DNA of 63,721 bases, the filler included, from Octopus bimaculoides (taxonomy: Eukaryota), in NCBI RefSeq assembly GCF_001194135.2. It is 4 parts of 4 records of this genome, joined end to end, with 100 filler letters (N's around TTAATTAATTAA, not from the genome) between each part and the next. Parts side by side here need not be neighbours in the genome. Positions count along the whole stretch, not along the records: positions 34,606 to 63,721 come from NC_068985.1; 3 more parts are not named here. One strand, written 5' to 3'. The notes under the pieces were generated by a model. That model made no database searches and was not told the origin of the DNA. It was given only the letters and a program-made list of their open reading frames with translations. Position numbers and translations under genes: made by a program. Shown piece after piece: positions 53,449-56,046 of this stretch. How positions within the stretch are numbered: the stretch's first letter is position 1; the number at the start of each line of letters is the position of its first letter.

Positions 53449-54189
53449 ATATATATATACACATATAACAAAGTAAAATTGGAAGGTACCACATGAGTGA
53501 AAATATATAGGGAAGAGGATTTGAAAATGTAGAGGTCTTTTAAAGATGTTCATTGGCTTGACCGGTTTCACTTGTTAAAAAATAAAAACTTTAAAAAATA
53601 AGGTGAAAGGCTTTGTGTAGCCTTTGTGGTGTTAAAATTTAGTTAATATACAGTGATAGAGTCTTTGATAATGAAAAGAATATGTTAAGAGAGGCTTTGT
53701 GTTTAAACAGTTTACATAAAAGTGTTCAAAATAGGTAGTAAAATAAGTTCATAATTGTTTATAAGTTCACCAGAAATCATAATTGTTGATAAGCATATTT
53801 ACAGAAAGAATTTGTAGACAATATTTGATAGGAGAAAGCGTGTATTGCTTTGTCAAAAGTTCATCAGAAATCGTAATTATTTATAAGGATTTTAGAGGAA
53901 TGACCAGTAACTAACCATTTTTCTTCATCTCCACAAGGCTGGAGATGAAGAAAAATGATTGGTCATTGGCTATGGGGCTATAAACAACAGTAGCATTGTC
54001 CCCTATGGGTCTGCCACATTTAGGTGGCAAATATACTTCATGATTCTGTGCTGCTACTGTTTACTTCTCGCTCAGAGATTTATTATTGCTTGTTTCTCCT
54101 TTTTCGAGATCAGTGACAGTTAGTCACTGGAAAAAGCATATACTATTTTGTGTTTGGAATGAGTTCTCATCGCTAGCTGGTGATTATCA

Positions 54190-55816
54190 TGTTGATGTGA
54201 GTTGTGACTTTTTATTTGAATTTCTGAATTGTTGAATTAAGGAAGTGTTGAGTTGATGTGCTGTTGAATTATTGAATTGTTGAATATTGTGTTGCATTTG
54301 TGAAATGGTTGAAAATTTTGTTTGGCTTCTCCAATTATGGGTGAAGCAGTGAATAAGGGAAATATGAATTCACAGGTCTAGACAGGCAGTTATGCTGCGG
54401 TAACAGGCAAAAGCCTGACAGCCGAGCTACTGCAGATACGGGAACTGAAAGTGAAAGACATAGACTACAAGAAATTTGATAAGCTGTTGAAGAAGGAAGG
54501 GGGATACCTAAGACTGACACGCAAAGAAGTAGCAGAGAAGTTGGAAAGAATAATAATTACTTATCGAACGCTGAAAATAGTGTCAAGAAAAGTAGAAATG
54601 GCAGGCATTGAAGAGATAGAGGTATGTTTAAAGAACGTAAAGAAAGTAACAACATTCTATAACAGAAGAAGAAAGTTTAGCACGGTGGAGGTGCGCTTCG
54701 TTAATAAGAACGAAGCAAAGAAGTACTCCACCATAGCCTTGAAATCGGCACAGTGGGCACTGTTACCTACTTACTGTGGCAGATGCACGGCCACAGTAAG
54801 AATAGGGAGAGTGCCGCCCGAAATTAACGAGGACTGGCTTGTGGCAGCCATCCTCTACAATACAGAGGAGGAAGCAGAGATACTGAAAATGTCAAAGACA
54901 TTGGAGATCAACTGGTGTGGGTATGGCCTGGAAGTGATGGTACATATCAACGTATCTGACCTCCACAAAACTGTGGAAGAGATAATCCTACCCGACGAAA
55001 CCAGATTGAGAATCATGGTGGAGAGTAGACCCGCAATATTTTTCGAATGTGGAGTAAGGGGGCACATAAAGGCAAAGTGTCCCCAGAAACACGAACAGGA
55101 GGTGGAGTGCCAGAAAGAAGTCAATGTAATAACAGAGAAAGAAACAGAGTTCACTGAGGTAGAGAGGAGAGAAAATAGTGAATCCCCTGCGAAAAAGAAA
55201 AGAAAAGCAGAGAAAAAGGAAAAAGAAAAAAATGAAGCAACGGGAGATCGAACACAGGAACTGGAGCCTTCAACAAGTAAGGAAGAGGAGGAACGGAAGG
55301 AACTGGAAGACAAGCAACAGAGCGAAATAGAAATGTCAGCACTAACGACAGAAAAGGAAGAGAGAATGTTACCCAAGGGAAAACATGAAAGACTGATAGT
55401 GATGTACGAGAAAAGTGTTGATATGGAGGAACGAATTGCAAAAATGAAAGGCGTAATGAGAGTGAGATTGGTTGATAGGGAGGAGAATAAAAACCTGAGA
55501 GCAGTGTTGCTGGATGATGAAAGGGCGGTTAGACTGACAGAGATATTCGGAAGCAGAGTGGACAATACACCATGTCGAGTTCAATACAATGAATTATCAC
55601 CAGTGGTAAATTTTGCAGATCTAAATATTTTTGCGGGGTAAACACGACACAAACTGAATTGTAAAAACAGTAAAATGGAACTTCTACTTTGTGGGTAGAA
55701 AGCCATTTCATCATCATAATTTTTCACACCTCATAATTCATTCGTAAATCATTTAATGTACCCCATGTTTGTCCTTGTAATGTCCTTTCTATATTAAGGC
55801 TTATAATAAAGAAAAA
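54190..55816 (+). mobile_element. ORF1-only (HAL1-like) polyadenylated retroelement with 15-bp TSD
   Basis: TSD AGCTGGTGATTATCA at 54175-54189 and 55817-55831; AATAAA at 55805-10 plus a short A tail; a single gag-like ORF. Confidence 0.75.
54364..55641 (+). pseudogene. L1/Tx1-like ORF1 protein (SYAAV motif, probable RRM-like folds, zinc knuckle FECGVRGHIKAKC, charged C-terminus)
   Basis: ATG at 54364 is in frame with the 396-aa ORF. One TAG at codon 6; the first knuckle Cys reads Phe. Confidence 0.7.
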
Positions 55817-55821
55817 AGCTG

Positions 55822-55872
55822 GTGATTATCACACACTAATGAAACTCAGAAACCCAGGTCTGTATGTATCAC
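55822..55872 (+). ncRNA. Degenerate type I hammerhead ribozyme
   Basis: Stem I GTGAT-TAT-CACACA / TGTATG-T-ATCAC, core CTAATGA (G5A), GAAA, stem III ACC-CA-GGT, GTC triplet (cut after 55860). Stem II is essentially missing. Confidence 0.55.
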
Positions 55873-56046
55873 GTAAGACTAGAGATGGGAACGATGATTT
55901 CCCTTTGCAAATACTAATCAGACACAGATAGTATGTTGTTAGCCAGCTGGAGGAGACGTCTTCCTGGGGCTATAAACAACAGTAGCATCATCTCCTATGG
56001 GTCTGCCACATTTAGGTGGAAAATATACTTCATGATATATATATAG

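Follow-up and report, generated by a model that had tools for sequence, protein, structure and literature searches.

What kind of element lies at positions 53973-56036 of the DNA analysed here, a stretch of 63,721 nucleotides from Octopus bimaculoides (assembly GCF_001194135.2; hereafter the window) whose last, 29-kb piece derives from NC_068985.1, is a question raised by the layout of the locus itself: two direct repeats of 72 bp enclose a block that bears an open reading frame (ORF), and once this block is removed there remains a non-coding unit of 350 nt with the apparent remnant of a hammerhead ribozyme. The original prediction regarded the locus as a decayed member of a cephalopod family of retrozymes or circular RNAs, and both the decayed hammerhead and the retrozyme-like family are supported by the relatives and the covariation reported below. 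Our analysis makes it quite probable that we are dealing with a dead copy from an Octopus family of non-coding retroelement units, small and highly base-paired, that are endowed with a minimal type I hammerhead. Judged by sequence, such units would be of the kind known as pseudo-long terminal repeats (pLTRs) of Penelope-like elements (PLEs) or, when they stand alone in tandem, as non-LTR retrozymes, i.e. a known kind of element represented by a cephalopod family.

The two terminal repeats, R1 (53973-54044) and R2 (55965-56036), which like all parts of the unit are read on the plus strand, agree at 68 of 72 positions (5.6% divergence); between them a 15-bp sequence, AGCTGGTGATTATCA, occurs at 54175-54189 and again, with 15 matches out of 15, at 55817-55831. 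Since the spacings of the two pairs are 1992 and 1642 nt, the period after splicing is exactly 350: removal of 54190-55831 leaves 422 nt, equivalent to 1.2 copies of the unit, and the ORF-bearing block between the 15-mers measures 1627 bp. The 72-bp repeats, the 1642-bp insert flanked by a target-site duplication (TSD) and the 350-nt monomer, all of them proposed beforehand, are therefore confirmed. The unit is non-coding and has a GC content of 40.9%, within the size (150-450 nt) and low-GC limits of non-LTR retrozymes, and at about 40% GC against 26-31% in the flanking intron DNA it is compositionally foreign to its surroundings. No second copy was found in the 29-kb piece; the translated stop-free frames of the unit have no relatives in the protein collection, and two exact-pattern scans of metagenome contigs returned no match.

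Relatives were sought in about 150 kb of Octopus DNA, six loci (L001 and L004-L008) chosen via genes that encode CCHC-type ORFs. An exhaustive HMMER search with the ORF of the insert retrieved 355 relatives, the 30 named among them being mostly proteins of O. bimaculoides, O. sinensis and O. vulgaris, while a word-index protein search with the same ORF gave no match, and look-ups of the window's 345-aa ORF and of octopus proteins present only in UniProt returned no record; two ENA contigs reached via a reverse transcriptase (RT) fragment (L002 and L003) were non-octopus and were left out. Short interspersed elements (SINEs) and other repeats of the window recur in the six loci at 75-93% identity. 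The proposal to search octopus DNA with the spliced 350-mer was borne out: BLASTN located a copy in O. sinensis (L008, 11720-11937; 76% identity over 219 nt, E 6e-40), a family profile recognized O. vulgaris L007 at three places (E 8e-83, 3e-55 and 4e-16, plus 1e-5) and a fragment in O. bimaculoides L001 (E 5e-8), and a custom covariance model of the ribozyme region revealed a further decayed copy in O. vulgaris L006. In total, seven copies or fragments lie in these loci besides that of the window, and in O. sinensis and O. vulgaris the homologous units adjoin related CCHC-ORF genes; the unit belongs to a multi-copy Octopus family.

These homologies also delimit the modules of the window copy. 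R1, with homologous R modules in L008, L007 and L001, is followed by M_left, the left part of the unit (54045-54174), whose counterparts lie in L007 (plus strand, 9690-9925) and L006 (9780-9925). Next comes the upstream 15-nt repeat (54175-54189), which has the sequence of the 5' strand of helix I of the hammerhead and finds an analogue in a pair of about 17 nt around the ORF body of L006. Beyond the inserted block (54190-55816), the downstream 15-nt repeat (55817-55831) constitutes the distal 5' strand of helix I, and the putative hammerhead (55832-55860) leads into M_right (55861-55964), which is 76% identical to L008 11718-11940. R2 forms the 3' end of the element; the L008 copy stops at the same base and continues, as in the window, into (TA)n.

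The probable hammerhead in the window and in related copies

The motif in the window is best described as a decayed minimal type I hammerhead. The proximal part of helix I (CACA) precedes CUAAUGA (55836-42), after which come AACUCA (55843-48), comprising the loop and 3' strand of helix II, GAAA (55849-52), CCCAGG (55853-58), a short helix III with a near-palindromic loop, and UC (55859-60), so that the former cleavage site would lie at 55860/55861. When compared with the consensus CUGANGA...GAAA...UH, the copy retains GAAA and the GUC triplet, whereas in CUAAUGA the conserved G5 has become A; helix II is absent, the six nucleotides AACUCA being unable to form it, helix III is minimal, and helix I keeps five of its six proximal pairs and, on inspection by eye, a distal GUGAU/AUCAC stretch. 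A descriptor relaxed enough to accept this motif finds four loci in the 29-kb piece as compared with 2.3 in shuffled sequence, and its chance rate is 3-5% for any 350-nt unit. Taken alone, the window copy does not qualify as a hammerhead: the type I hammerhead of the original prediction holds as regards position, motif and GUC, but not as regards G5, helix II or a match in Rfam.

The homologous site in the relatives carries what the window copy lacks. The L008 core reads CACACA-CUGAUGA-C-GGG-UCAAUA-CCC-A-GAAAC-UUGG-GUC-CGUGUG and that of L007 (minus strand, 9600-9540) CUCCAGA-CUGAAGA-C-GAG-CAAAGA-CUC-A-GAAA-CUAG-UC-UCUGGA; in the relatives helix II has 3 bp, helix III is short and palindromic, and GAAAC and GUC are present, and in both of these copies the conserved core and all three helices are present. 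The expectation that a family consensus should show CUGANGA, stem II and GAAA is consequently borne out, as CUGAUGA in L008 and CUGAAGA in L007. Aligned with these two, the window is found to be without exactly 8 nt, ACGGGUCA, which make up the 5' strand of helix II. Because the relatives keep the core and helix II at the homologous position, the ribozyme of the window would have been lost through the G5-to-A change and the 8-nt deletion, which leaves a copy that is presumably inert. The same deletion overturned an argument from age that we had considered, namely that R1 and R2, with 4 differences in 72 positions, are too young for helix II to have been lost.

Compensatory changes, whose presence had been suggested as a check, are found in helices I and II as well as in other stems. 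The three-sequence alignment of the ribozyme has 87.5% of its cells paired and contains four double changes, of which three fall in helix I and one in helix II, as opposed to 6-52% pairing and no double change in controls slid by 1-3 columns, and the custom covariance model scores 90 bits at the motif of the window. The helix-III segment is a perfect palindrome in L007 (ACUAGU); the window (ACCCAGGU) and L008 (ACUUGGGU) stand one or two transitions away from the presumed ancestral palindrome ACCCGGGU, which agrees with the palindromic ancestor of stem III put forward earlier. Double changes also distinguish the stem that joins R to M_left (CAGTAGCA/TGCTACTG versus CGGTGGTG/CACCACCG), the R hairpin (TGCCAC/GTGGCA versus CTGTCA/TGACAG) and the D hairpin of M_right (GGAGGA/TCTTCC versus GGAAGC/GCTTCC). 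Descriptors that demand the exact core recover five loci in 148 kb of the Octopus loci against 0.33 in shuffles. Counted among these five is a second, unrelated hammerhead-like element (CUGAUGA-UUUCAUUUGAAU-GAAAC...) at L007 5880-6090, which forms an inverted pair with (TA)n on both sides.

The remaining pairings of the unit are as follows. The R/M_left stem unites AACAGTAGCA (53986-53995, within R1) with TGCTACTGTT (54052-61, within M_left); the R hairpin TGCCAC-ATTTAG-GTGGCA occupies 54012-54029 of R1, the hairpin CAGTGAC-AGTTA-GTCACTG 54111-29 of M_left and the D hairpin GGAGGA-GACG-TCTTCC 55949-64 of M_right. The 5' arm of the helix-I rod, in M_left, comprises CATATACTATTTTGTG (54137-52) and GTTCTCATCGCTAG (54163-76), and M_right supplies the 3' strand of helix I, UGUAUGUAUCAC, together with the 3' arm of the rod, CTAGAGATGGGAAC (55879-92) and CACAGATAGTATG (55923-35). 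Six helices checked base by base are all present in the window sequence as the original prediction had it, and four of them have a pair probability of at least 0.83 in the circular ensemble; two are weak there, however, namely the stem-I extension (0.22) and CTTTTTC/GAAAAAG (0.02), and forcing all six costs 9.2 kcal/mol over the minimum free energy (MFE). For CATATACTATTTTGTG/CACAGATAGTATG only the positions of the two strings were established, and their region is paired in the MFE structure. The circular MFE of the unit departs from that of shuffles by z = -3.5 on the plus strand and -2.6 on the minus strand, and among the 468 native windows of 350 nt in the piece the unit ranks within the top 3%. 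The L007 unit (z = -3.9) folds into a long rod that is tipped by the three-way junction of the hammerhead, and in units of the family at large the hammerhead is predicted to sit at the tip of such a helix-I rod.

A number of observations weigh against this interpretation and have to be set beside it. The window holds a single ribozyme remnant, and a dead one; scanned with Rfam at E<=10, the piece and the two halves of the unit (sub-regions of 261 and 321 nt) returned no ribozyme, and with release 15 at the same threshold neither Hammerhead_1 nor any other model of its clan was reported at L007 9520-9640 (minus strand) or L008 11700-11812 (plus strand) either. The ribozyme call derives from a hand-made descriptor, from homology and from the covariation of only three or four sequences, and both better copies carry a C.A mismatch at the base of helix II. 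The sample comprises only about 150 kb and is biased towards CCHC-ORF genes. As to a kinship with PLEs, no PLE-type ORF exists among those of 110 aa or more in the window piece, which has only remnants of RT and endonuclease (EN) from long interspersed elements (LINEs), and no ORF with a Penelope-type RT or GIY-YIG domain was noticed in the other loci, where no protein-domain screen was made. The Rfam result is nevertheless weak evidence, because the motifs of L007 and L008 with their intact core were missed too and PLE hammerheads are atypical, and we dropped it as an argument against the hammerhead; according to PMC7229834 the PLE hammerheads are atypical minimal variants, and the motifs of that paper were themselves found by descriptor searches. 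Since Rfam models miss these minimal ribozymes, their absence from automated annotation says little.

One might then ask whether the hammerhead likeness is a coincidence in a piece of intron DNA that underwent local tandem duplication. Such a reading would accommodate the failure of the window copy, on its own, in every ribozyme test, the 3-5% of units in which the relaxed motif is expected and the lack of a second copy in the 29-kb piece; it would leave without explanation the homologues at unrelated Octopus loci, their intact core at the same position, the compensatory changes and a GC content foreign to the flanks. We consider it very improbable.

Insertion architecture and resemblance to known elements

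Every copy seen abuts (TA)n, in each case at the 3' junction at least: at 56037 in the window, at 11941 in L008, at 9334 in L007 and at 9625 and 11723 in L006; the L007 copy at 6890-7140 has (TA)n on both sides, and the same is true of L006. The 3' ends of the copies vary: they coincide with the end of R in the window, in L008 and at L007 11785, two L007 copies run on for about 60 nt more, and the L006 copy stops 18 nt after the cleavage site. The window copy is a partial tandem of the form R-M-R, while inverted and direct partial copies accompany one another in L007 (9870-9335 and 6890-7140) and in L006 (9640-9820), the inverted one at the 5' side in both. Two marks of PLEs, a partial tandem serving as pseudo-LTR or an inverted partial copy and a bias of insertion towards (TA)n, are hence found in the family. 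Sampled relatives occur as single, partial or inverted copies, the window has 1.2 copies with one dead ribozyme, and arrays of at least two ribozymes were not encountered in any sampled locus.

The hallmarks described for PLEs (PMC8557442, which cites Cervera & de la Pena 2014 for hammerheads in PLE pseudo-LTRs) are a hammerhead close to the 3' end, insertion into microsatellites, partial tandems that act as pseudo-LTRs, and 5'-truncated copies in inverted orientation. The Octopus units resemble PLE pseudo-LTRs in their terminal repeats from partial tandems, in the inverted 5'-truncated copy upstream, in the adjoining (TA)n and in the minimal hammerhead near the 3' end, and they differ in that the only ORF found at them is a LINE-type ORF1. 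Among PLEs, a preference for (TA)n is typical of the Naiads, which are without canonical hammerheads (PMC8557442) and in this respect differ from the Octopus family. A parallel in layout is Chlamys-2_cBra, a PLE of a charophyte alga in which an ORF with a CCHC knuckle (gag-like zf-CCHC) likewise precedes a 3' hammerhead within one element (PMC8557442); this Chlamys family, however, is apparently autonomous and belongs to an alga of the plant lineage, whereas the CCHC ORF of Octopus is homologous to ORF1 of a LINE with APE and RT, and has LINE-type ends and flanking duplications.

A second comparison is with non-LTR retrozymes, small tandem units with type I hammerheads that are known from coral, mussel and axolotl (Cervera & de la Pena 2020, PMC7229834). 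Like these, the Octopus unit is non-coding, of similar length (350 nt as compared with 170-400) and below 45% GC, has a type I hammerhead whose helix III is very short and whose loop is palindromic, features also of the minimal variants of amphibians and PLEs, is predicted to be strongly base-paired as RNA and occurs in head-to-tail partial copies. Unlike them, it amounts to only 1.2 copies in the window, several units contain a LINE ORF1 body that the retrozymes of that paper are not described to have, and the (TA)n at its junctions and its partial copies in inverted orientation are indicative of insertion in the manner of PLEs. A 2026 preprint (10.64898/2026.07.22.740005) argues that retrozymes are non-autonomous PLE derivatives and traces them to PLE pLTRs.

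If intact members behave like their known counterparts, their RNA would undergo self-cleavage after GUC, and would probably do so as a dimer held through the palindromic loop of helix III; monomers, either linear or circular after ligation, would be copied by an RT supplied in trans; and the copies would be inserted into (TA)n microsatellites, a process that would yield partial head-to-tail or inverted partial copies. Self-cleavage, action as a dimer, circularisation and the identity of the mobilising RT are what we infer here. Hammerhead-bearing repeats are known from cnidarians, bivalves, amphibians and others, and no report of such repeats in cephalopods was found in the literature searched; Octopus would add a lineage with large, repeat-rich genomes and heavy RNA biology, and with it a concrete family defined by a 350-nt unit and a minimal, probably dimeric hammerhead.

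Other classes were considered for the unit and rejected. No tRNA was found that could support a tRNA-like or SINE head; a TRIM or LTR element is disfavoured by the lack, on inspection by eye, of TG..CA ends, a primer-binding site, a polypurine tract and a 5-bp duplication; and the part between the repeats (M), again by eye, has no terminal inverted repeats such as a MITE would have. The 72-bp repeats are not a long target duplication caused by insertion of M, R and M_left being contiguous in other copies, and SINE B, which adjoins the 3' end of the unit, did not truncate a longer array, for no unit sequence lies beyond it.

A LINE-derived block at a fixed point of the unit

Because its ORF is homologous to ORF1 of a LINE from Argonauta hians and its 3' end is common to that LINE, the block at 54190-55816 (plus strand), flanked by the 15-bp duplication, is an ORF1-only LINE derivative. 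Its 5' untranslated region (UTR) contains 16-nt tandem repeats, about four copies of which (TTGAATT...) lie at 54216-54295; an intact frame of 396 codons follows (54451-55641, first ATG at 54598) with a weak CCHC knuckle, and the 3' end reads ...TATAATAAAGAAAAA. The homologous Argonauta ORF (locus L009; 24% identity, E 8e-18) is ORF1 of a full-length LINE at 9807-15242, in which it is succeeded by ORF2 with APE endonuclease and RT and which is bounded by a 16-bp TSD. That LINE ends in AATAAAGAAATG and shares the motif AATAAAGAAA with the window block; the bodies in the window, L006 and L008 and also a SINE end in the same motif. No hammerhead unit is present at the Argonauta LINE. HAL1 is a mammalian ORF1-only LINE derivative. 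Like derivatives of this sort, the Octopus block keeps the 5' UTR, ORF1 and the LINE 3' end and has lost ORF2; unlike them, it recurs at a fixed position in a ribozyme-bearing repeat.

The 3' end, of the form CCCCTCTRT...AATAAAGAAAT, is common to the Argonauta LINE and the octopus ORF1-only elements, and a SINE of tRNA-derived appearance has the same 3' end as the latter (L008 10440-10655; L001 16484-16540), which suggests a LINE/SINE partnership.

At four loci, namely the window, L006, L007 and L008, which represent at least two species and the source of the window, the ORF1 body stands 4 nt 5' of the ribozyme core. Both junctions are seen in L006, where the flanking repeats match at about 15 of 17 positions, the left one in L007 and the right one in L008; L007 additionally holds an uninterrupted, empty site. 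The original prediction had named as contrary to its reading the case that the unit is the LTR or UTR of a known coding element, and these four loci go part of the way towards that case. The insert may accordingly be cargo that travels with the unit instead of an unrelated late insertion, and as a tentative proposal, to which we give somewhat less than even odds, the locus would represent a hammerhead-bearing retrozyme or pLTR family with LINE ORF1 cargo at a fixed point of helix I, or else a LINE lineage that homes to this point.

How the block came to occupy that point admits two answers. The unit could be the terminal (pLTR or UTR) part of a composite element in which one old LINE insertion was captured and which has since been copied whole, as 1992 nt; in terms of the composite the window would then hold 1.04 copies, and the count of 1.2 copies of a 350-mer interrupted by a late insert would no longer apply; the chances of this come close to even without quite reaching it. 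The fixed site and the full-length bodies would be so explained because the cargo was propagated from one old capture: the body occupies the same place in the window, L006, L007 and L008 and is complete at its 5' end in three loci, even though the LINE machinery is not site specific, the Argonauta LINE and the same-ended SINE sitting in unrelated targets. The ORFs, moreover, are only 26-37% identical to that of the window and the units have diverged too (76% in L008, 68% in L007), and this parallel divergence suggests a long joint history. What a single capture does not readily explain is that the two flanking repeats of one element resemble each other much more closely (15/15 in the window, about 15/17 in L006) than those of different subfamilies do, as is expected of fresh TSDs, that the ORF and repeats of the window are intact while its ribozyme is decayed, and that L007 has a unit site without interruption; insertion in one piece is also weakly evidenced, the left edge of L008 being obscured by other repeats.

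It is from these very features that the second answer draws its strength, for the likeness of the repeats within an element and the intact ORF beside a decayed ribozyme would follow from repeated insertion: unrelated ORF1-only LINE derivatives would prefer the site in the ribozyme unit, and one of them would have entered the older unit of the window late and generated its 15-bp TSD. The duplication in the window is perfect and its body terminates in the canonical AATAAAGAAA, as does the Argonauta LINE with its 16-bp duplication; the intact ORF contrasts with the ribozyme and with the 5.6% divergence of R1 and R2, the empty site of L007 could be a target, and the duplicated segment begins with GCTGG in both the window and L006. 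Yet the same enzyme family inserts elsewhere, four chance insertions at one base are implausible without a specificity, and none was seen; next to the body, moreover, neither L008 nor L007 has the remaining half of the target that would be expected there. Repeated insertion seems to us the unlikelier course, and we lean slightly towards an old capture of the block as cargo, perhaps accompanied by recombination against units devoid of the ORF. Should either cargo or homing prove true, a ribozyme repeat and a nucleic-acid-binding protein of LINE origin would have remained partners throughout the divergence of several subfamilies and species; if confirmed genome-wide, the recurrent LINE-ORF1 block would present the unusual situation that one retroelement carries or targets another, and could bear on how retrozymes recruit proteins and RTs.

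Surroundings of the unit in the window

The unit is situated between two octopus SINEs, 87% identical to each other, that stand in inverted orientation with their tails inward (53120-53462 on the plus strand; SINE B, 56037-56410, on the minus strand). Each copy terminates in a (GAT)n tail and then (TA)n, and the 3' end of the unit makes use of the (TA)n of SINE B, so that the strandless tract at 56037-56046 is common to both. Three nucleotides from the 5' end of R1 there is a 66-nt palindrome (53904-53969, no strand; arms of 30 nt, 87% complementary) that has no similarity to the unit. Other copies show inverted partial units on that side, and the palindrome may be a junction structure of the insertion, its membership in the element being uncertain. 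Its minus strand yields a weak, mir-1-like covariance match of 26 bits, as compared with a gathering score of 45.6.

Further downstream, an exon-like frame at 56969-57172 (plus strand) has ag/gt borders and weak similarity to WD40 or beta-propeller proteins (E ~0.003), and no protein in the protein collection matches it; the unit probably lies in an intron. By far the most stable folds in the piece are those of 61399-61866 and 50518-50868, whose MFE residuals lie between -60 and -115 kcal/mol on either strand and which look like large foldback or inverted-repeat elements. Finally, decayed LINE remnants occupy 41146-46361 on the minus strand, with zf-RVT, RVT_1 and endonuclease fragments, and are 71% identical to an O. 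bimaculoides element in L001.

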